From the IMG/VR virus record IMGVR_UViG_3300050120_000230, positions 248,001 through 312,000 of that record: DNA of 64,000 bases. The stretch is one strand, 5' to 3'. The notes under the pieces are model-generated. The model was not told the DNA's origin and ran no database searches. It saw nothing but the letters and a program-made list of their open reading frames with translations. Positions 15,965-54,136 of the stretch are shown in pieces. Every line of letters starts with the position of its first letter. The first letter of the stretch is position 1. Position numbers and translations under genes: made by a program.

Positions 15965-16260
15965 GTCCGGCCCGTGAATTCTTCGTTGAACCTTTCAGGC
16001 GGAACGGTGCTCCACCGAGTCCCCCACCGGCCATCGCGGGTGACTTGGAACATCGTTGGGAGTTTCACGAATTCCTCGAACAATTGCCACTTCATATCCG
16101 TTCGATCTTGCCCTCGGAAACGCTCGTCATCTGTCGTCAGGATCGTGGTGACGTATTCGAGCGTGCATCCTAGATGCCGGTGAACACCGCTCATCTTGGC
16201 CATAAGCTCGGCCTTCTCGATCACGAGAACGGCCGCCGCGAGCGTTTCCGGTTCGAGCAT
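15961..16260 (-). CDS. Hypothetical protein
   Basis: Overlapping gene run. Confidence 0.5.
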   Translation of the reverse strand: MLEPETLAAAVLVIEKAELMAKMSGVHRHLGCTLEYVTTILTTDDERFRGQDRTDMKWQLFEEFVKLPTMFQVTRDGRWGTRWSTVPPERFNEEFTGRT

Positions 16261-17342: not shown

Positions 17343-17372
17343 TTGACTTCATCGTCCAGAGGGGTCTAAATA
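17343..17372 (+). promoter_or_regulatory. Hybrid promoter TTGACT-N17-CTAAATA for the release factor gene
   Basis: TTGACT 17343-17348; CTAAATA 17366-17372. Confidence 0.55.
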
Positions 17373-17440: not shown

Positions 17441-18139
17441 ATGAAAAGGATTCTGGAAATCCGCTCCGCTGAAGGCGGCGCCGATTCTCAACTGTTCGTC
17501 CGCGATCTCTCGGACGCCTATCTTCGCCTGTTCGCCCGCAAGGGTTGAAAGTCCCGCGTCGTAAGGGAACGCCCATCTGACGCGGGCATAAGCGAGATCG
17601 CCTTCGAAATCGAAGGCAAGGGTCTCGAACCTCTCAAAAATGAAATCGGCGGACACCGCATTCAGCGTGTCCCTCCCACCGAAAGGCGCGGCCGTGTCCA
17701 CACGAGCACCGTGACCGTTGCTGTCATGGATGCGGATGTTACGATGCTGTCCACCTTTTCGGCGCGGGGGGCTGGCGATTTCCGAATCGAATGGTTTTCC
17801 GGTTCGGGAGCAGGAGGCCAGCACCGTAACAAACATCAGAACTCATGTCGGGTGCATCATGTTCCCAGCGGCATGTCCGAAGCCCGCCAAGGTCGCAAGC
17901 GCGAGGCAAACCTCAAAGATGCTATGGATGGTTTGACCAAGGCGCTCGACGCCGCTCAGCGAGGTGAACTCGGTGCGGTTGTCTCGACGGAACGCAAGGG
18001 TCAAGTCGGAAGTGGTATGCGAGGCGATAAGACCGTGACTATTCGTTTCCAAGACGATAAAGTCGCGCACCACATGACCGGCAAGACGATGTCCGCGACC
18101 CGCTACATGAAAGGGTTCATGGACGAGGTTTGGAGCTAA
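17441..18139 (+). CDS. prfA-like: RF1-like peptide chain release factor (lacks domain 1) with in-frame UGA at codon 36
   Basis: MKRILEIRSAEGG...FARKG*KSR...GGHRIQRVPPTERRGRVHTSTVTVAV...GAGGQHRNK; TGA at 17546-17548; the ORF track reports only 17711-18139. Confidence 0.85.
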
Positions 18140-19427: not shown

Positions 19428-20036
19428 GTGCGTATTTTTCAACTCTTCGAGGCGGCGAGTTTGCCCATGGACCCGGAATCTCGGTTCCGCCGGGCCGAAG
19501 AGCTTGGTTTCACCGTCAAAGCGTTCCATGGCACCGGAGCAGACTTCCATTCGTTCTCGCTGGCCAAAGGTAAGCCTGCGCGCGGTGGTGGCTACGCCCC
19601 GATGTTCTCGAACGTCCCCGGCGAGGCTGGCGGCTACGCCAACAAGATCAAGGGTCATGTTCTTCCCGTTCTGCTGAGAATGCAGCGGCCGATGGAAATC
19701 AGTCACCTCAAGAAACCCGGCATGGACAAGCTGCTCGCCGGTGTCCCTTCACGATGGGATGACGGCGCCAAGAGTACCCGAGACGTGATGGATTCGGTGT
19801 GGAAATACTGGTTCGACAAACTGGGTGACCAAAAGAAAGCATGGACCGAAGTGTATCGCCACTTCGCCGCGCTGGGATACGACAGTTTCGTGTTCGCCGA
19901 CATCGAGCGCGACTATCCCGATGGCGCCACGGATTCGTTGCACACGAAGTTCGTCATCTTCGATCCAAAAAATGTTCGTTCGATTTTTGCGGCATTCGAT
20001 CCCAGCAAGGCGAACTCCGCGAACCTGCTGGCTTAG
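19428..20036 (+). CDS. ART-PolyVal-like ADP-ribosyltransferase domain protein with capsid-targeting-like N-terminus
   Basis: MRIFQLFEA; AFHGT..F..F...MFS...A.GYA...VLPVLL...GYDS...IFDPKNVRSIFAAFDP. Confidence 0.65.
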   Translation: MRIFQLFEAASLPMDPESRFRRAEELGFTVKAFHGTGADFHSFSLAKGKPARGGGYAPMFSNVPGEAGGYANKIKGHVLPVLLRMQRPMEISHLKKPGMDKLLAGVPSRWDDGAKSTRDVMDSVWKYWFDKLGDQKKAWTEVYRHFAALGYDSFVFADIERDYPDGATDSLHTKFVIFDPKNVRSIFAAFDPSKANSANLLA

Positions 20037-20578
20037 CCGTGCATCATCTTGAAGACGGCCGCTGCCTGCATATCGTCGAACGAGAAAATCAAAGTCCCGT
20101 CTCGACCTTGCCACCTACGACGATTCGTCCGCAATTTCATCGACCATACTTTGGCGTTTGATTGGGTCTCGACCCACTCCGCGATTTCATCCAAATCGGC
20201 CGCCTTCGCTTCGGCAACTTCCACCTCAAACTCTTGCGGCTCCATACTGAACCTAACCGTGAATTTTTCGGGCACCGCTATCCAACAGTCCGCAGCATCG
20301 GGTTCGTCGGCCGCCGTGACCAATCGGAACATGTAGACAGGTTCTTCGTCGCGTTTTTTCGCATAGCCTTTGCCAACGACGTTCAGGAACACCGGGATGG
20401 AAGACATGCGCTCGTATTCGGCTTCCTCGGCCTTTCGCTCGGCGACCGCATTTTTGTAAGCCGGGGTCTCCTGTAGCTCTGCCATGGCGGATTGCATGGG
20501 AGTGAGTTTATATCGGTCTGTGCGGCTTTTGTTGCATAGGTCGGCTCGCATCTGAGCGGCCTCTTCTTCCTCGGTCAT
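20033..20578 (-). CDS. DAxxFK[LM]xW-family protein
   Basis: W.E...W...FSFDDMQAAAVFKMMHG. Confidence 0.65.
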   Translation of the reverse strand: MTEEEEAAQMRADLCNKSRTDRYKLTPMQSAMAELQETPAYKNAVAERKAEEAEYERMSSIPVFLNVVGKGYAKKRDEEPVYMFRLVTAADEPDAADCWIAVPEKFTVRFSMEPQEFEVEVAEAKAADLDEIAEWVETQSNAKVWSMKLRTNRRRWQGRDGTLIFSFDDMQAAAVFKMMHG

Positions 20579-20753
20579 TTGGCGGCGCCTTTCATTAACA
20601 CCACATATTTATTTCGGCCGCCTGTCACGTTTGCCGAATCTCGCCTCCTTAAAGATAGGAGCGCAACCAAACGCGTTTCTCACACACCGTAAATGTGTGT
20701 GGCCCTTATCGTTTTGCGCGCTCTGGTTATTCATCATCAGAAGGAGACGAATC

Positions 20754-20963
20754 ATGGGACAAATGCTGATCTTCCCCGAGTGGGCTTTCAAGGTGTCGAA
20801 TGCCGAGATGCTCATCATGCTCAAGGCGCTCGGTGGCCGCCTTCGAAATGACGACGAGATCGCCGAAGCGAAGGAACTGGGTGACAAGCTCACTCGCAGT
20901 CGCATCTCTGAGTTGGAGCATGTGACCACCCACCTCAAGAAGTCGATGGAGGAAAGTAGTTGA
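20754..20963 (+). CDS. Hypothetical protein
   Basis: SD AAGGAG upstream. Confidence 0.6.
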   Translation: MGQMLIFPEWAFKVSNAEMLIMLKALGGRLRNDDEIAEAKELGDKLTRSRISELEHVTTHLKKSMEESS

Positions 20964-20989
20964 CGAGAGCTAAACTCTCGGACTAAATA
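20960..20989 (+). promoter_or_regulatory. Hybrid promoter TTGACG-N17-CTAAATA with inverted repeat CGAGAG-ctaaa-CTCTCG in the spacer
   Basis: Directly visible; predicted TSS at or near ATG 20995. Confidence 0.6.
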
Positions 20990-20994
20990 GGAGG

Positions 20995-21036
20995 ATGAGA
21001 ATGACGGTCACCACGCGAACAACGACCACCGGCTGA
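20995..21036 (+). CDS. Thr-rich leader peptide MRMTVTTRTTTTG (putative attenuator uORF)
   Basis: 7 of 13 codons are Thr; stop codon inside a hairpin; 34 nt upstream of tRNA-Thr genes. Confidence 0.7.
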   Translation: MRMTVTTRTTTTG

Positions 21037-21070
21037 GCCCCTGCAAGGGTTTCAGTCGTAGAGGTTGCGC

Positions 21071-21153
21071 GCCACGGTGGCTCAGCGGCGACAGCGCGTC
21101 ATTCGTAATGACGAATACAAACACCGGGGGTTCGAGTCCCTCCCGTGGCACCA
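21071..21153 (+). tRNA. tRNA-Thr(CGT), enlarged variable loop, encoded CCA
   Basis: Acceptor GCCACGG/CCGTGGC; anticodon stem CGTCA/TGACG, loop TT-CGT-AA; T-loop TTCGAGT. Confidence 0.85.
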
Positions 21154-21171
21154 ACCTCTCATCCTCCATAT

Positions 21172-21335
21172 GCCGGTTTAGCTCAGTTGGTAGAGCAGTG
21201 GTTTTGTTTCCGTGGCGGGTAATAGCCTCGGGTCGAGCGATCTTCGGATCGCTCCCTTTGAAGGACAGAGAGCCTAAAGCTCACAAGTCCAAGGAAAACC
21301 GAAGGTCGCGGGTTCGAGTCCTGCAACCGGCACCA
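21172..21335 (+). tRNA. tRNA-Thr(TGT) interrupted by an 88-nt insert (21208-21295) directly after the anticodon
   Basis: Exons GCCGGTT...GTGGTTT-TGT and AA-ACCGA-AGGTC-GCGGG-TTCGAGT-CCTGC-AACCGGC-ACCA rebuild a canonical tRNA. Confidence 0.8.
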
Positions 21336-21541
21336 TTTTACCAGCTTTCGCCAGCAGCAATATCTTGTCGTGCAGATCGAAATGCAAAAAAACGTGGATA
21401 AATAATACCTGAAAGTCCCCACCCAAAGATGGACAAGACTCTTCAGGGAACATGATGGGGCCTATGACAGTCCTATTTAGTTTGTTCCCACACGCCAGTC
21501 ATGGCCAAACCCCAACAAACCAAAATTAAGGAACACACATT

Positions 21542-21961
21542 ATGGGAATATTACCCCCAAAATTACTGCCGCAACTGCCCAAACTTCCACCACTCGCCCC
21601 CGGCTTGACGCCCGACAGTGCCATGTTGCCGCCCGGCCTTAGAGCAATCTTTGACTCCAAGCCCAACTCTTTGTTGGAAAAACTCAGTCTTGGAGTCCAA
21701 GCACCCAAGGACGGTTTTTTCGGTAGCGATTTTCAAGCCCTTTTGAAACGCGAGACAGTTTTGAGCAAAATGTCATTTGCTCCTCCTCCTCTTGCTCCTC
21801 TCGCCCCTCCACCTCGCTCACCTCAAATCATCTACTCTCACGAATACACCCGCATCGACATAGATACTATACGAGTTACTATAACGATGCAGTGTGGTGG
21901 AAAAGTCATCCATGTGGAAAGCGAAACAGTTGATCTTCGAGAACTCAACTGGGTATCGTAA
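21542..21961 (+). CDS. Proline-rich hypothetical protein
   Basis: SD AAGGA; multiple PP/PPP motifs. Confidence 0.5.
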   Translation: MGILPPKLLPQLPKLPPLAPGLTPDSAMLPPGLRAIFDSKPNSLLEKLSLGVQAPKDGFFGSDFQALLKRETVLSKMSFAPPPLAPLAPPPRSPQIIYSHEYTRIDIDTIRVTITMQCGGKVIHVESETVDLRELNWVS

Positions 21962-21999
21962 GATAAACCAGACACCGCGCCTTTGGTAGGGCGCGGTGT

Positions 22000-23760
22000 T
22001 CACCTTCGAATGCCGTGCTTCTCGATGTAAGCCGGGATGCCCGGCCGCAATTCGATCATGTGCTTGTAGCTCATGTGCTGTTCGAAATACTCGGCGTAGG
22101 TAGCTGCGTCTCTCATCGGCAAAGACTTGAACGCCATGTCGAACGCTTTGATGTTGTGGTTCATGAGTGTCGTGAGGAAGCGTGACCAGTTCATGCCGGT
22201 GTCAGCTTCGCTCTTGTAAGACATCACGAAATATTTGTAGAGCAACTTGGGTGAGATGTTCTGCGGCGAGCGCGAACCGAATGCCATCACTTCCCTTGTG
22301 AAAGCTTGGATATCATGCGTCATCGCCCAATCAACCAGTTCGTCATTGGCCGCCCGCCCGTGATGGTTCTGCCCAATGACCTTACCGATGTAGCTGGGAT
22401 CGTTTTTCATGATCGTGATGAGTGCCTCGGTTGAGAACGGCACCTTATCGAAGTAGTAGGCGAACTTCGTGGCGTTCTCGTTGAGATAGGCAAGAACTCC
22501 GGGGCGAACGATCTCGGCATGTAGGAACTTTTCGAGTGAGTCCGGGTGCTGTTTCAGAAGAGCTACGAGTTTTTCGTCCGTCATGGGCATCCAACGGATG
22601 AGTCCGATGTAGCCGAAGTAGACGAACTCTATCCAATGCTTCTCGAAAAATTCCTGCGTTCCCTTCGGTAGAATGTCGAACGGGATCAGATGCGGCATCG
22701 ACGACAGGTTCTTTTTCATCACGTCTTCCGCGAGCCCGGCCGCAACTTTTCCGGCCTTCAAATCGCGCATGAACATGCCGGGATTTTCCGAGTAGATTTG
22801 GACGTAACCGCGTTCGCTTTGCACATCGGCGCGATTGTCTACGACTTCCAACACCCGCAGATTTTCTTTCGAGAAGAAGACCGCCTGTGTGGGTTCATTT
22901 TCATGGATGATGCCCCTGTCAGTCGGATCGACCACACCGGAGTATCCGAGCGCACGAAACAGCTTCGACCATTGAGCGCGGACGGTGGCTTTCGCTGCTT
23001 CGACGATCACACTCTCGCTGGTGTATTCGTCTTCTTCGGCCTCATCGTCGTGATCTTCCCAATCATCGTCTTCATCATCGTCGGGCACGAAGTCGTCTTC
23101 ATATTCTTCGTCCTCATCGTCGTCTTCGCCATATTTGATCTCGACGAAATCGCGAGCGTCGGGATTGCCATGAACGCCGTTGGCGATATTGGTCAAATAC
23201 ATCGCAGCGATGCGGGTCACGTTCCAGAAAGCGCCAGCAGTCGATTGAACCAGTGCATGTCGTTCGGCACGGTCCACGTCGATGCGGATGTGCAAACCTT
23301 GGTGATCCATAATAGTCTGGATTTTTTCAACATCTGCTCGCATATCGGCGCGGCTGTAGGTGGACAGGTCGAGTATCTTGCCGCCTGCACGGAAGACCTG
23401 AATGTAAGGCTCGTTGCCTGCGAAAGGCACGACGCCTTTTTCTTTGATGACGTAATCGACCGGATAGGAATAGATGCCAATCGGGGTGTCGTATTGTGAT
23501 TTCGGATTGATACCGAACTTCGTGCCGCGAACGTTGTGGGCACCCTTCTTCGAACTTACGCCGCCTTTGAAGGCAGTATCGGCGCGTAGCTTGTTGCCAT
23601 GACTGGCGACGCCAACATCAGAGACGTAGCTGACGAACACGTCTGTCTGTCCCGCATATTTGGACAATTCCTCTACGGTCGAACGCTTCGGCGCCAACCC
23701 GCCTGCTCGGCGCTTCTCACTGAGGAGAGAACGGTTGTTGAAAAGTTCGACCAGACGCAT
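22000..23760 (-). CDS. Large capsid-targeted-type protein with central Asp/Glu tract
   Basis: MRLVELF...LLSE; ATAAATA 4 nt upstream; DDDEDEEYEDD... tract. Confidence 0.75.
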   Translation of the reverse strand: MRLVELFNNRSLLSEKRRAGGLAPKRSTVEELSKYAGQTDVFVSYVSDVGVASHGNKLRADTAFKGGVSSKKGAHNVRGTKFGINPKSQYDTPIGIYSYPVDYVIKEKGVVPFAGNEPYIQVFRAGGKILDLSTYSRADMRADVEKIQTIMDHQGLHIRIDVDRAERHALVQSTAGAFWNVTRIAAMYLTNIANGVHGNPDARDFVEIKYGEDDDEDEEYEDDFVPDDDEDDDWEDHDDEAEEDEYTSESVIVEAAKATVRAQWSKLFRALGYSGVVDPTDRGIIHENEPTQAVFFSKENLRVLEVVDNRADVQSERGYVQIYSENPGMFMRDLKAGKVAAGLAEDVMKKNLSSMPHLIPFDILPKGTQEFFEKHWIEFVYFGYIGLIRWMPMTDEKLVALLKQHPDSLEKFLHAEIVRPGVLAYLNENATKFAYYFDKVPFSTEALITIMKNDPSYIGKVIGQNHHGRAANDELVDWAMTHDIQAFTREVMAFGSRSPQNISPKLLYKYFVMSYKSEADTGMNWSRFLTTLMNHNIKAFDMAFKSLPMRDAATYAEYFEQHMSYKHMIELRPGIPAYIEKHGIRR

Positions 23761-39298: not shown

Positions 39299-39768
39299 TC
39301 GAACCCAATATCCATGGCGTGCCCGCGCAGACGATCATGATCGTCTGTGAGCGCATCCATGTGCTTGGCCATATCATTCGACGACACCCGACTTTACACG
39401 CGCTCGAAATCATGGGGGTTAAGTTCCTCTTTGAAGAAAATGCGATCCAGCGCGGTTACCAGAACATGCGCGAAATACATCTGCGCGGAGAAGACTGGGA
39501 AGTTTGGATGCGGAGCATTCGCTTCGTCCCAGAATACGAACCGGTCGAATGGAACGTCAAAGCCGGAGCTACCACTTCATGGCCCAAGCCGCGAAAAGCC
39601 AAAGCCCTCCCCGATGACGTTGTGCGCTGGGGCCGAGAAGCATACTATCAAATCAACGGTCTTCGTTTCGACGGCGACGAAGAGACGTTCAAGAAGAACA
39701 TGGTCATAGCCAAGATGCTCGGCGATCTCGCCGACTGGCAACATGCTCTTGACGCGTTCAAAAGTTGA
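39295..39768 (+). CDS. GD..F..D subfamily protein
   Basis: FDGDEETFKKNMVIAKML. Confidence 0.65.
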   Translation: MIEPNIHGVPAQTIMIVCERIHVLGHIIRRHPTLHALEIMGVKFLFEENAIQRGYQNMREIHLRGEDWEVWMRSIRFVPEYEPVEWNVKAGATTSWPKPRKAKALPDDVVRWGREAYYQINGLRFDGDEETFKKNMVIAKMLGDLADWQHALDAFKS

Positions 39769-39804
39769 CTTCTGTCATTTGGTTGACTAAATCTAAATTA
39801 CTCT

Positions 39805-39897
39805 CTGAGTGGCCGCGCGGCGCGAAGGGAGCCTAAAGAACACGGCGCCGCTGGTTCCGGCCGGGTTGGATTCCCGGTGATCCGGCGGCGTCGTCAC
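39805..39897 (+). ncRNA. GC-rich structured element of unknown class upstream of valS
   Basis: Stems CGGCGC/GCGCCG and CCGGG-TTGGATT-CCCGG within a longer CGCTGG/CCGGCG helix. Confidence 0.35.
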
Positions 39898-39940
39898 TAA
39901 ATACGCACTTAATCGCCATACCGTAGGAGGATAGGCAAAT

Positions 39941-41422
39941 GTGGGACGTAAGCAGCTAACGAAGACCTTCGATCATCGCACCGAAGAGTCCTCGATCTAT
40001 CAGAATTGGGAGACTAGCGGTGCGTTCGCCCCTCGCGGCGACGGTCCTGCTTATTTTCTCCCAATGCCACCGCCGAATATCACCGGCATCTTGCACATGG
40101 GGCACGCACTTTTCGCGACCCTGCAAGACATCTCGACCCGCTATCATCGCATGAAAGGGGACGCCACGTTGTGGCTGCCGGGAAGCGACCATGCGGGCCT
40201 CGCAACGCAAGACAAGCTCGATGCTCTCATGATCGAGCAAGGGCTCGACCCTAACGGTCCAGAGTTCGATGCGTTCGCGGAAACCTACAAGCTCAGCCTG
40301 CAAGGCACGATCATGAAACAGCTTCGAAGCTGTGGTGCATCGTGTGATTGGTCCCGCGAGACGTTCACGCTCGACGACCGCTACTCCAACGCCGTCCAGA
40401 CGGCTTGGAAAAAGTGCAACGACGCTGGCCTGACCTACGCCAAGGAAGGTGAACTCTTCATCAACATGGAGCCATTGGCCAAGCGTCTGCTTGACCATCT
40501 CGATGCTGGTGATCTGAAGATCATTCCGGCCGGTGGAGAAGGAACTCTGCGGAACTTCCTGACCAAGATCGAGCCATGGAACATCAGTCGTAAAATCCGC
40601 TGGGGTCACAAAATCCCCGGATGGTTCCACGACGGGCACAACATGGTCTTCGATACATGGTTCTCGTCGGCACTCTGGCCGTTCGCCACGCTTGGTTGGC
40701 CAGACGACACCGAAGACATGCAGCGATTCTACCCGGCGGCCATGATCGAAACGGCTGACGACATTCTGTTCTTCTGGTGTGCGCGGATGCTCATGATGGG
40801 CCTCCTGCTCACCGACCGTCTGCCGTTCGACACGATCTTCCTGCACGGTTTGATCCGTGACAAGCACGGAAAGAAGATGTCGAAATCGGCTGGCAACGGC
40901 ATCGACCCACTCGACATCATCGAACGTTACGGCGCCGACAGTATGCGGTTTGCCTTGGCCGAAGCTGCCACGCCCGGTCAAGACATGAGGATGTGGGACG
41001 ACAAGTTCCAAGCAGGCAAAGCTCTGCGGACGAAACTGTGGAACGCCGCTCGATATTCCTTGGCCCATTACGAACGCCTAGGAAGCCCGCAGGAGCCCTT
41101 TAAGCCCTCGAAGCACTACGACGACGTTGAGATGGAAAAGAGGCTCACAGCGGCTCACAGGGACGCTACAGAGGCATTTGAAGAGCTACGTTACCACGAG
41201 GCTGCTCATGGGATCAGAAAGTTCATCTTCGAAGACTTGTGTGGCTGGTATATCGAGGCCACGAAGAGCCGTCTATACGACGAAGATGACCAAGATGCTC
41301 TTCAAACCCTGATGTGGGCTCTGGATGGCACGTTGAAGATGCTTCATCCGATCATGCCGTTCATCACTGAGCGCATTCGTGAGGCATATTCGGGCACGCC
41401 GCTCATCACAGATGCGTGGTAG
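39941..41422 (+). CDS. valS: Minimal valyl-tRNA synthetase (no CP1 editing domain, no C-terminal coiled coil)
   Basis: PPPNITGILHMGH, GSDHAGLATQ, WNISR..RWGH.IP, VFDTWFSSALWPF, KMSKS, YG.D..RF, LHP.MPFITE. Confidence 0.95.
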   Translation: MGRKQLTKTFDHRTEESSIYQNWETSGAFAPRGDGPAYFLPMPPPNITGILHMGHALFATLQDISTRYHRMKGDATLWLPGSDHAGLATQDKLDALMIEQGLDPNGPEFDAFAETYKLSLQGTIMKQLRSCGASCDWSRETFTLDDRYSNAVQTAWKKCNDAGLTYAKEGELFINMEPLAKRLLDHLDAGDLKIIPAGGEGTLRNFLTKIEPWNISRKIRWGHKIPGWFHDGHNMVFDTWFSSALWPFATLGWPDDTEDMQRFYPAAMIETADDILFFWCARMLMMGLLLTDRLPFDTIFLHGLIRDKHGKKMSKSAGNGIDPLDIIERYGADSMRFALAEAATPGQDMRMWDDKFQAGKALRTKLWNAARYSLAHYERLGSPQEPFKPSKHYDDVEMEKRLTAAHRDATEAFEELRYHEAAHGIRKFIFEDLCGWYIEATKSRLYDEDDQDALQTLMWALDGTLKMLHPIMPFITERIREAYSGTPLITDAW

Positions 41423-48807: not shown

Positions 48808-48843
48808 ATAAATGTTGACGGGCCGATTCCGGTCCTTCATAAA
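48804..48843 (+). promoter_or_regulatory. Late motif CTAAATA (48804) plus TTGACG (48815)-N17-CATAAA promoter with a spacer hairpin
   Basis: Directly visible upstream of the leader ORF and tRNA cluster. Confidence 0.5.
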
Positions 48844-48852
48844 GAACATACT

Positions 48853-48984
48853 ATGACAAACGCACGCACCATTTTCGGAACCGCCAACGCGCCCCTCGGG
48901 CGCGATTGCGGCGATATGGGCGGTCGGGGCGAACGAGAACTTCGCGCCGGGATGGTTCGTCATGGTGTTCTGACCAGCTTCTAA
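48853..48984 (+). CDS. 43-aa Gly/Asp/Glu-enriched leader peptide (putative attenuator uORF)
   Basis: MTNARTIFGTANAPLGRDCGDMGGRGERELRAGMVRHGVLTSF; absent from ORF track. Confidence 0.55.
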   Translation: MTNARTIFGTANAPLGRDCGDMGGRGERELRAGMVRHGVLTSF

Positions 48985-49072: not shown

Positions 49073-49148
49073 GGAGCGGTAGCTCAGTGGTAGCAGCGCC
49101 GGTTTGTCAGGCCGAAGGTCGCGGGTTCGATCCCCGTCCGCTTCGCCA
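49073..49148 (+). tRNA. tRNA-Asp(GTC), encoded CCA
   Basis: GGAGCGG/CCGCTTC; loop TT-GTC-AG. Confidence 0.9.
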
Positions 49149-49173
49149 TTTCATTTGAAGCTAGGTGATTTGA

Positions 49174-49245
49174 GCGGCTGTAGCTCAGTGGTAGAGCATC
49201 TCGTTGCCAACGAGAATGTCGCGGGTTCGAATCCCGCCAGCCGCT
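49174..49245 (+). tRNA. tRNA-Gly(GCC), no encoded CCA, flanked by a 13-bp inverted repeat
   Basis: GCGGCTG/CAGCCGC, U73; TCTCG-TTGCCAA-CGAGA. Confidence 0.9.
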
Positions 49246-49281
49246 CAAATCACCTAGAAGGCAATCCTCCGAGACCTTTAC

Positions 49282-49355
49282 GGAGCGTTCGACTATGGGT
49301 AAGTCATCACCCTTTCAAGGTGAGGTAGCGGGTTCGAGCCCCGCACGCTCTACCA
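49282..49355 (+). tRNA. tRNA-Glu(TTC), encoded CCA
   Basis: TCACC-CTTTCAA-GGTGA. Confidence 0.9.
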
Positions 49356-49357
49356 AT

Positions 49358-49431
49358 GGACCGTTCGTCTATGGGTAGGACACCACGTTCTCAGCGTGGG
49401 GGAAGGGGTTCAAGCCCCCTACGGTCTACCA
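49358..49431 (+). tRNA. tRNA-Glu(CTC), encoded CCA
   Basis: CCACG-TTCTCAG-CGTGG. Confidence 0.9.
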
Positions 49432-49468
49432 ATCTCAGCTTCGGTTGAGACGATCTTTGAAACTATAT

Positions 49469-49540
49469 GCGGGCGTAACTCAGCGGTAGAGTGTCAGCCT
49501 TCCAAGCTGTTCGTCGCAGGTTCGATCCCTGTCGCCCGCT
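49469..49540 (+). tRNA. tRNA-Gly(TCC), no encoded CCA
   Basis: GCGGGCG/CGCCCGC, U73; TCAGC-CTTCCAA-GCTGT. Confidence 0.9.
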
Positions 49541-49549
49541 CACTTTCAT

Positions 49550-49621
49550 GCAATCTTCGTCTATCGGCTAAGACGCCTTGCTTTCCGGCAGGAAAGAGCA
49601 GTTCGATTCTGCTAGGTTGCT
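49550..49621 (+). tRNA. Atypical tRNA-Gly-like gene with non-canonical (6- or 8-nt) anticodon loop
   Basis: GCAATCT/AGGTTGC plus U73; T arm AGCAG-TTCGATT-CTGCT; CTTGC-TTTCCG-GCAGG. Confidence 0.6.
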
Positions 49622-52198: not shown

Positions 52199-54136
52199 AT
52201 GACCGAACCCTACGATCACGCGACCGTCGAGCAGAAATGGCGCCAGTTCTGGGCGAAATCACGCCTGTTCGATCAGGCGCTCGCAAGCCGGACGAAGACG
52301 AAATACTACGTGCTGGAAATGTTCCCGTATCCCTCGGGTCGCATCCACATGGGGCATGTCCGCAACTACGCCATCGGCGACGTGCTGGCGCGCTACAAGC
52401 GCAGCCAAGGCTTCAACGTGCTTCATCCCATGGGCTGGGACGGCTTCGGCCTGCCCGCTGAGAACGCGGCCATTGAAAATGGCACGCACCCTGCGGACTG
52501 GACGTTCGCCAACATCGCCGCCATGCGTGAGCAATTGAAGCGTCTGGGCTTGTCCGTGGACTGGACGCGCGAAATCGCGACTTGTGACCCGGCGTACTAC
52601 GGTGAGCAGCAAAAACTCTTCCTGCGGCTGCTGTCCGCTGGTCTCGCCTATCGCAAAGAAAGCGAAGTCAACTGGGACACCGTGGACAACACTGTGCTGG
52701 CCAACGAACAGGTCATCGACGGTAAGGGCTGGCGCTCGGGTGCACCTGTCGAGAAGCGGATGCTGACCCAGTGGTTCTTCCGAATCACCAACTACGCCGA
52801 TGAACTGCTGGACGGTTTGAAGACCCTGTCGAACTGGCCGGAGAAGGTCAAGACGATGCAGCAAAACTGGATCGGCAAGGACGAAGACGGCAACACGATG
52901 CTGCGCGACTGGGGCGTGTCTCGGCAGCGGTATTGGGGTTGCCCGATCCCGGTGATCCATTGCACCGAGTGCGGCATCGTCCCGGCCGAAACGCCGGTGA
53001 TCCTGCCAAAAGATGTGGACTTCACAATCCCCGGCAACCCGCTGGCCAACCATCCGACGTGGAAACACGTCGCGTGCCCGACGTGCGGCGAGGATGCGAC
53101 GCGTGAGACCGACACCATGGACACGTTCGTGGACTCGTCGTGGTATTTCGCCCGCTTCGTCAGCGCCGACCCCGCGAACCCGATCTGCGATGCGGGCATC
53201 GATCATTGGATGCCGGTCGATCAATATGTCGGTGGTATCGAACACGCCATCCTGCATCTGCTGTATGCCCGGTTCTTCACCAAAGCGTTGCGCGACACGG
53301 GCTGTTGGCGAGTGGACGAACCATTCACCGGGCTGTTCACGCAAGGCATGGTCACGCACAAGACCTATCGAACCGTGATCGGCAAGGAATGGGTCTACCC
53401 GGAAGAAGTGACCCTCAACAGCGACGGCGTCACGGCCAAGATGACCGCCACCGGACTTCACGTCGAAATCGGCGCGGCCGAGAAGATGTCGAAGAGCAAG
53501 AAAAACGTCGTCAGTCCTGACGCGATCTTCGACAAGTATGGCGTCGATGCCGCCCGCCTGTTCGTGCTGTCAGACAGCCCGCCGGAGCGCGATTTCGTGT
53601 GGTCCGAAGCTGGTGTCAAAGGCGCCGCAGGATTCATCCAGAAAGTCTGGAACGTCATCAACGAACCCGATGGCGTGCCGGACCAAACCAACATCATCCT
53701 GACCCACCAGACGATCAAGGACGTGACCGATTGTCTGGACAACTTCAAGTTCAACAAAGCGGTCAGTCTCCTGCATGTTTTCGTAGCCGGGATCACCGGT
53801 AAGGCCGACGTGGCGACCAAGAAAATTCTGATCCAACTGATCTCGCCGATGACGCCACATCTGGCCGAAGAGGCATGGCACGATCTCAAGGGTTGCTACT
53901 CCATCGTGGATGAACCGTGGCCGACGTTCAATCCCGCTCTGTTGGTGCCGCCGAACGTCACCATGCCGGTGTCGGTGAACGGCAAGCGCCGCAGCGAGAT
54001 CGTTGTCCCGCTGGATCACGCCGACGACTTGGTCATCGCCATTGCGACGGCTGATCCCGAAGTCATGCGCTTCATCGGCGATGGTGTGAAGAAAGCCATC
54101 GTCGTCAAGAACCGCATCGTAAATCTGGTGGTGTGA
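52199..54136 (+). CDS. leuS: Leucyl-tRNA synthetase lacking the CP1 editing domain
   Basis: [89 protein letters not shown]. Confidence 0.97.

Follow-up and report, generated by a model that had tools for sequence, protein, structure and literature searches.

Ribosome-mediated attenuation is known from the thr operon attenuator of enterobacteria, with its thrL leader peptide, and from the trpL, hisL, pheL and leuL class. In these systems, a short leader ORF is packed with codons for one amino acid, and the ribosome speed on those codons is read out through RNA structure overlapping the end of the ORF. The pheM-pheST attenuator of E. coli and the T-box riboswitches adjust components of the aminoacyl-tRNA supply chain (synthetases) to the charging state of the cognate tRNA; pheM does so through a leader peptide rich in Phe codons, whereas T-boxes bind the uncharged tRNA directly and need no ribosome. 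In tnaC, mgtL/mgtP and other uORF-Rho systems, a ribosome stalled in or at the end of a tiny ORF hides RNA that Rho or a hairpin needs and so allows read-through (a uORF example is PMC12121999). [quoted passage not shown]

Here, we analyzed a 64,000-nt stretch (the window) of IMGVR_UViG_3300050120_000230, a 415-kb phage contig, in which a mini-gene rich in threonine codons precedes two tRNA-Thr genes. The window has a G+C content of about 55% and encodes a tail sheath, two class-I aminoacyl-tRNA synthetases (aaRS), a release factor and at least eight tRNA genes, in addition to an interrupted one described below. No cultured close relative was found in the GenBank phage set, as tblastn with the release factor gave at most 39% identity, and the host is therefore unknown. 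The tRNAs most resemble those of Rhizobium and Sinorhizobium phages. The features of the locus are as follows.

20960..20988 (+), promoter-like motif: TTGACG (20960-20965), a 17-nt spacer, then CTAAAT (20983-20988); the stop codon of the upstream 69-aa gene (20754-20963) overlaps the first hexamer.
20995..21036 (+), leader ORF of 13 codons plus TGA (21034-21036), MRMTVTTRTTTTG, with 7 Thr codons; its ATG (20995-20997) lies 7 nt after the -10 element, and the mRNA is predicted to be leaderless.
21014..21022 (+), invariant core CGCGAACAA (codons ..G CGA ACA A..), the 5' strand of a possible long-range helix, P1.
21030..21058 (+), hairpin P2, whose 5' arm contains the last sense codon and the TGA stop codon.
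21059..21070 (+), leader tail, in which GGTTGCGC (21063-21070) is the possible 3' strand of P1 and abuts the tRNA 5' end.
21071..21153 (+), tRNA-Thr(CGU), 83 nt, with an unusual 13-nt variable loop.
21172..21335 (+), tRNA-Thr(UGU) interrupted by an 88-nt insert; the exons are 21172-21207 and 21296-21335, and the insert is 21208-21295, between nt 36 and 37.

The observation held: the original prediction described a Thr-rich short ORF starting at 20995, with its stop codon in a hairpin directly upstream of a tRNA-Thr pair, and all of this was confirmed from the sequence. The ORF reads ATG AGA ATG ACG GTC ACC ACG CGA ACA ACG ACC ACC GGC TGA, and the Thr codons are ACG x3, ACA x1 and ACC x3, as had been stated. 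Of 722 short ATG ORFs (8-25 codons, both strands) in the window, this ORF has the highest single-amino-acid fraction. Shuffling its own nucleotides reached seven in-frame ACN codons in 5e-5 of trials, and the other two frames hold no ACN triplets. The first tRNA was called Thr(cgt) by ARAGORN, and 21071-21150 matched the Rfam tRNA family (RF00005) at 53.9 bits against a gathering score of 29. The second tRNA does carry the TGT anticodon that had been assigned to it; however, the insert lies directly after the anticodon, and neither ARAGORN nor Rfam called the gene, which matches only after removal of the insert. It was recognized because its exons are identical to an uninterrupted tRNA-Thr(UGU) in a relative (L052, below), and BLAST hit Rhizobium-phage tRNA-Thr in two pieces. 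The first protein gene follows about 200 nt after the tRNA genes.

The original interpretation, a thrL-type attenuation in which ribosome stalling remodels the leader and controls tRNA-Thr transcription or RNase P processing, was only partly supported. Conservation of the ORF had been named among the points on which it could fail, and the regions upstream of phage tRNA-Thr genes as the place to look. We searched for relatives by synteny. Homologues of the upstream 69-aa gene gave one related huge-phage contig with the element (L003), whereas L004-L006 from the same search lack the locus, and the downstream 139-aa gene has no homologues. Homologues of the release-factor gene, 2.6 kb upstream, gave three further contigs with the element (L052, L074 and L078), and also loci without the leader. 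The element lies at 6468-6543 in L003, 5235-5161 (minus strand) in L052, 6852-6923 in L074 and 12488-12560 in L078, which is identical in L079. The encoded peptides are MKSTNTTRTTTTV (L003), MSMKNTPRTTTTV (L052), MSLKHTPRTTTTV (L074) and MTYSTTTTRTIIAG (L078).

All five members share the motif TTGAC-N16/17-CTAAAT, then 6-7 variable nucleotides followed by an invariant ATGA, an ORF of 13 codons (14 in L078), a TGA inside the invariant CTGAG of the 5' arm of the hairpin, a 12-14-nt tail, and tRNA-Thr(CGU) followed by tRNA-Thr(UGU). The conservation of the short ORF, its Thr-codon richness, its start at the predicted transcript 5' end and its stop inside a hairpin, always directly in front of tRNA-Thr genes, fits a ribosome-sensed Thr leader. 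In L074, a third tRNA-Thr follows. The tRNA bodies differ between members, with an 83-nt type harboring a long variable loop and a 75-nt type; L074 carries both, and differential loss explains the pattern.

Sequence-based searches did not extend this set. The exact core was found in IMG/VR only in the source contig and L052, plus chance hits in GC-rich phages. A codon-level pattern returned 30 loci in IMG/VR, of which the only hits near tRNAs (L014 and L034) are out-of-frame inside a 232-aa gene. The codon-level pattern returned 10 loci in JGI metagenomes, none next to a tRNA-Thr; the small ORF MTVLATTRTTTTY in two of the loci examined (L039/L046) is followed by a PLD-like protein, without a threonine link. 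A structure-aware pattern in 185,579 genomes gave nine chance hits, and in BLAST against GenBank phages only tRNA pieces matched.

The Thr codons number 7, 7, 5, 5 and 6 of the 12-13 codons after the ATG, whereas the proteins of the phage contain 5.6% Thr. The shuffle p-values ranged from 5e-5 to 0.015, and ACN triplets occur 0-1 times in the other frames. With codons numbered from the invariant CGA, position -2 is Thr in all five members, spelled ACC, ACT or ACG, and position -4 is Thr in three members, spelled ACG, ACA or ACT. L078 replaced ACG ACC ACC by ATT ATC GCA downstream, carries Thr at positions -7 and -3, where the others have none, and is one codon longer through an in-frame 3-nt indel. 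Outside the Thr and Arg positions, the peptide is not conserved, as expected for a sensory leader rather than a functional peptide. However, the core CGCGAACAA, extended to 17 nt in four members, is invariant at synonymous sites too, and variable columns are not biased to third codon positions (5, 7 and 6 of 12); an RNA-level constraint thus coexists and could by itself keep some ACN triplets. Additionally, the five sequences come from one phage clade, so the link to tRNA-Thr is essentially one evolutionary event. The enriched codon family would match the downstream tRNA by chance in roughly 1 case in 16-20.

The original prediction placed the transcription start at the ATG. This rests on the motif TTGAC-N17-CTAAAT, which ends 6 nt before the ATG and is invariant in all five leader-bearing loci while its flanks vary; ATGA is likewise an island of invariance between variable flanks. 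The motif recurs in the window at 17343, before the release-factor gene, and at 39765, before an aaRS gene. In related loci, it lies 9-11 nt before the mature 5' ends of Thr, Ser, Ala and Val tRNAs, a spacing that places +1 about 7 nt after CTAAAT, which is the A of the ATG in this leader. The motif resembles the Sinorhizobium sigma-70 consensus CTTGAC-N17-CTATAT, a resemblance that was not tested here. However, an E. coli-type sigma-70 scan did not call the site, and no RNA 5'-end data exist, so whether the transcript begins at the AUG stays a prediction from position. The AGGAGG just before the ATG of the window is not conserved in the relatives.

The hairpin P2 folded as originally described and has 9-11 bp. 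In the five-sequence alignment, 95.6% of cells pair, against 33-44% when the partner strand is slid, and two pairs change on both sides (CG<->AU, UA<->GU). The leaders of L003 and L052 fold far better than shuffled sequences (z = -3.45 and -3.85), whereas that of the window does not (z = -0.61). The second helix, P1, joins the middle of the ORF (around GAAC) to the last nucleotides before the tRNA, corresponding to the GTT/GCGCG with CGCG/AAC pairing of the original prediction. This pairing is possible in the window but no better than in shuffled tails (352 of 500 pair as well); it is convincing in L003 (12/500) and L052 (21/500), weak in L074 (74/500) and no better than shuffled in L078 (339/500), and its register differs between members. 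The alternative ACGAC:GUCGU pairing that had been proposed exists only in the window and is absent from L003, L052, L074 and L078. The absence of a poly-U tract was correctly stated for the window. A terminator-like, U-rich tail was called only in L078, and not in the window, L074 or L003; with the hairpin present in all five members and four of them lacking a terminator-like U-tract, the outcome speaks neither for nor against an intrinsic terminator before the tRNA genes.

Folding with and without ribosome-occluded segments had been suggested as a check, and we performed it with a 28-nt footprint. A ribosome with the last Thr codon in its A site abolished P2 in every member. A ribosome covering the upstream Thr codons raised the probability that the last seven leader nucleotides are unpaired from 0.12-0.26 to 0.5-0.67 in four of five members. 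This result follows largely from the geometry and is not independent evidence. Several Thr codons lie far enough upstream that a ribosome stalled there would not reach P2.

The leader is optional. Relatives with 66-68% identical release factors have the same promoter 10-11 nt before a tRNA-Thr and no ORF, with L087-L090 carrying a tRNA-Thr(CGU)/(UGU) pair and L084 a single tRNA-Thr(UGU). Sinorhizobium phage Phosso has the 83-nt tRNA-Thr type behind its own promoter, also without an ORF. The leader of roughly 65 nt is therefore an addition to an otherwise sufficient expression unit, which fits a regulatory role. It is not a general device of these phages: of 20 promoter-motif sites in related loci, only the five Thr leaders have an ATG at +6/+7 followed by an ORF rich in the codons of the downstream tRNA, and in this sample the leaders of Ala, Ser and Val tRNAs do not. 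Since the release-factor gene has an in-frame TGA, we considered whether TGA is a sense codon here, in which case the ORF would run on; this was rejected as a genome-wide code because many long, well-formed genes end in TGA.

Compared with thrL and its class, the locus shares the short leader ORF enriched in codons cognate to the regulated function. However, its target is a pair of tRNA genes rather than genes for amino-acid biosynthesis or charging proteins, the ORF is predicted to be leaderless, the element is phage-encoded, and the conserved structure is one hairpin with an optional enclosing helix, without a conserved set of mutually exclusive 1:2, 2:3 and 3:4 hairpins or a conserved antiterminator alternative. 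Sequence similarity to thrL was neither sought nor seen. Compared with the mycobacterial polycysteine ORFs, to which it is closest, the amino acid, the organisms and the sequences differ, and there is no downstream ribosome-binding site or protein gene; the structure that a stalled ribosome would block (P2, possibly P1) precedes a tRNA, and only this analogous occlusion could be modelled. The pheM-pheST attenuator and the T-boxes both regulate protein genes. No T-box or other cis-regulatory Rfam family appeared at E <= 1 in 20000-22500, and the leader is only 72-76 nt long. In comparison with the uORF-Rho systems, no rut site or Rho dependence has been shown here, and the untranslated stretch is short and followed by highly structured tRNA. 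The logic is that of leader-peptide attenuation (thrL, trpL, pheM), and full-text literature searches turned up no report of a leader peptide controlling a tRNA gene.

Our preferred explanation, held tentatively, is that the leader is a ribosome-read sensor of threonyl-tRNA supply placed in front of the phage's own tRNA-Thr genes. In this view, transcription would start at or within a base of the A of the ATG, and a 70S ribosome would load on the 5'-terminal AUG and translate 13 codons, 5-7 of which are Thr. The Thr run ends 0-5 nt before P2, so that a ribosome dwelling on the last Thr codons because charged tRNA-Thr is scarce would keep P2, and any pairing of the leader tail to the ORF, from forming. 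When the leader is not translated, or the ribosome finishes and leaves quickly, the structure would form and lower the tRNA output. The regulated step is most likely premature termination or pausing of transcription before the tRNA, hairpin-dependent where the tail is U-rich and otherwise possibly Rho-assisted on the C-rich, G-poor, unstructured ORF; as a net effect, scarce Thr-tRNA would give more tRNA-Thr and ample Thr-tRNA less. The analysis demonstrates the conserved anatomy, the Thr-codon enrichment, the hairpin covariation and the linkage to tRNA-Thr, whereas the start site, translation of the ORF, stalling, the sign of the effect and the regulated step (termination, Rho action or processing) are inferences from sequence, as no transcript, ribosome or tRNA-level data exist. 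The leader is also very short, and a ribosome must load quickly to influence a polymerase only 40-70 nt ahead.

Under this reading, which is possible but tentative, a tRNA gene would be regulated by a leader peptide written in its own codons: the phage would measure on a leaderless mini-ORF how fast ribosomes get through Thr codons and use that to set transcription or maturation of its tRNA-Thr(CGU)/(UGU) pair. This would be the first ribosome-mediated attenuator found to control a non-coding RNA gene, extending classical attenuation to an RNA product, and would give a tRNA a direct homeostatic product-feedback loop. How phages regulate the many tRNA genes they carry is largely unknown, and bacterial tRNA synthesis is generally thought to be set at the promoter (growth-rate and stringent control) and by processing. 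Such a leader would show that huge phages tune, and do not merely supplement, the host translation apparatus. The element, about 110 nt from promoter to tRNA, is self-contained, easy to test in reporter constructs, and could serve as a compact sensor of threonyl-tRNA charging.

Among the alternatives, the one that survives best, although we consider it doubtful, is a non-coding structured 5' leader, or a small RNA released by RNase P, in which P2 and the invariant core would act as a processing, stability or protein-binding element. The A/C-rich 5' half would simply be kept unstructured, and the ORF and its Thr codons would be by-products. The invariance of the core at synonymous sites and the lack of third-position bias favor this reading, the absence of in-frame stop codons in a few variable codons is not statistically remarkable, other tRNA leaders in this clade are structured and lack such ORFs, and T4-type phages co-transcribe small stable RNAs with their tRNAs. 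However, AC dinucleotides fall almost only in the frame set by the invariant ATG, Thr is kept through synonymous changes and through relocation in L078 together with an in-frame indel, the ATG sits at the predicted +1 in all five members, and the stop codon is always in the hairpin arm.

A less likely alternative keeps the Thr-sensing translated leader but places the regulated step at maturation. In the untranslated state, P1 would form directly next to the RNase P cleavage site and slow 5' processing or favor misfolding of the pre-tRNA, and a stalled ribosome would free the tail. In L003 and L052, a 6-7-bp helix ends 1-2 nt from tRNA position +1. The last leader nucleotides are freed in four of five members in the constrained folds described above, and the distance from the TCAG in the 3' arm of P2 to the GGTG near the tRNA 5' end, counted by eye, is 20 nt in all five members. 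Against this, P1 is weak or no better than shuffled tails in three of five members, its register differs, and RNase P usually acts fast and tolerates many leaders. Still less likely is a feed-forward sensor of opposite sign, in which only a ribosome translating smoothly to the UGA would cover P2 at the right moment and allow read-through, whereas stalling at the early Thr codons (positions 4-7, or 2-8 in L078) would leave P2 free and shut down tRNA-Thr synthesis, avoiding accumulation of uncharged tRNA-Thr during threonine starvation. The upstream Thr codons, which are most of those in L078, fit this reading; however, in four of five members the invariant run of four Thr codons directly abuts P2, where a stalled ribosome must block the hairpin, and known leader-peptide systems induce their target on stalling. 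A neutral remnant, a chance ORF or a Thr-rich peptide with a function of its own is very unlikely, despite the small sample and the absence of the leader from several relatives without evident consequence, because the element is conserved across phages whose release factors are only 68-82% identical, P2 shows compensatory changes, and the lack of peptide conservation outside Thr and Arg argues against a functional peptide.

The operon carries a second oddity in the insert of tRNA-Thr(UGU). A homologous 88-nt insert occupies the same site in a 561-kb phage (L100); the two share a conserved 3' domain, with one compensatory pair in it, and have different tetraloop-capped hairpins in the 5' half. 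The insert matches no Rfam family and is too short for a group I intron. The release-factor gene behind the same promoter motif (17441-18139; RF1-like PPT motif, GGQ) has an in-frame TGA at a position where intact homologues have Trp, and needs UGA read-through; together with the insert, this points to a wider phage programme of translational control. Split gene calls suggest the same feature of the release-factor gene in many relatives.

The second tRNA gene of the pair, tRNA-Thr(UGU), harbors an 88-nt, highly structured intervening sequence, which sits exactly between nt 36 and 37 of the tRNA. A homologous 88-nt insert was found at the same site in L100, an unrelated 561-kb phage contig. The positions are as follows:

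Window 21172-21335: tRNA-Thr(UGU), including the insert
Window 21208-21295: 88-nt intervening sequence
L100 5473-5310, minus strand: the corresponding locus with the homologous 88-nt insert

The two inserts share a conserved 3' domain and one compensatory pair, and they have UUCG- versus GAAA-capped hairpins. The intervening sequence matched no Rfam family and had no BLAST hit, and it is too short for a group I intron. It may represent a new small tRNA intron or ribozyme. The neighboring tRNA-Thr at 21071-21153 has an unusual 13-nt variable loop, resulting in a total length of 83 nt. This type is shared with Sinorhizobium phage Phosso and the 642-kb uncultured phage LR756502 (L048 595-677 and L049 about 601-679), where the anticodon is UGU rather than CGU.

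A phage release-factor gene, with a GGQ motif and an RF1-like PPT motif, was identified at 17441-18139 on the plus strand. The gene has an in-frame TGA at 17546-17548 (at 2359-2361 in the related huge-phage contig L003), at the position where the intact homologues P0007, P0032, P0042, and P0070 have Trp in the motif RKGWK. In many relatives, the gene calls were split into 35 aa plus about 150 aa, which suggests that the feature is widespread. Other genes end normally in TGA, so this looks like programmed read-through or autoregulation rather than a changed genetic code.

The promoter-like motif TTGAC-N17-CTAAAT recurs specifically before translation genes, namely the release factor, aaRS, and tRNAs. 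It was found at 17343, 20960, and 39765 on the plus strand of the window and at many sites in the phage loci L085, L084, L087-L088, and L076. This recurrence suggests a co-regulated translation gene set. The release-factor 5' UTR also has a conserved hairpin. Two class-I (Ile/Leu/Val/Met-type) aminoacyl-tRNA synthetase genes were located on the plus strand, at 39765-41422 and 52199-54136. The first lies about 150 nt behind the promoter motif, so it has a long untranslated leader that might itself be regulatory.

A further promoter-like sequence, TTGACG-N17-CATAAAG, was observed ahead of the tRNA cluster, in the following arrangement:

Window 48816-48984, plus strand: promoter-like sequence followed by a 43-aa ORF with a Gly/Asp/Glu/Arg-rich middle
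Window 49073-49621: tRNA cluster, with the tRNAs Asp, Gly, Glu, Glu, and Gly
Window 49550-49621, plus strand: tRNA-like gene of undetermined identity at the end of the cluster

The amino-acid match is weak, and the arrangement was not tested in relatives. The tRNA-like gene at the end of the cluster was reported by ARAGORN with an abnormal anticodon loop (tc). In L085, a related 192-kb phage contig, a tRNA with the amber-reading anticodon CUA, that is, a suppressor-type tRNA, was found at 16085-16161; it was called tRNA-Pyl.
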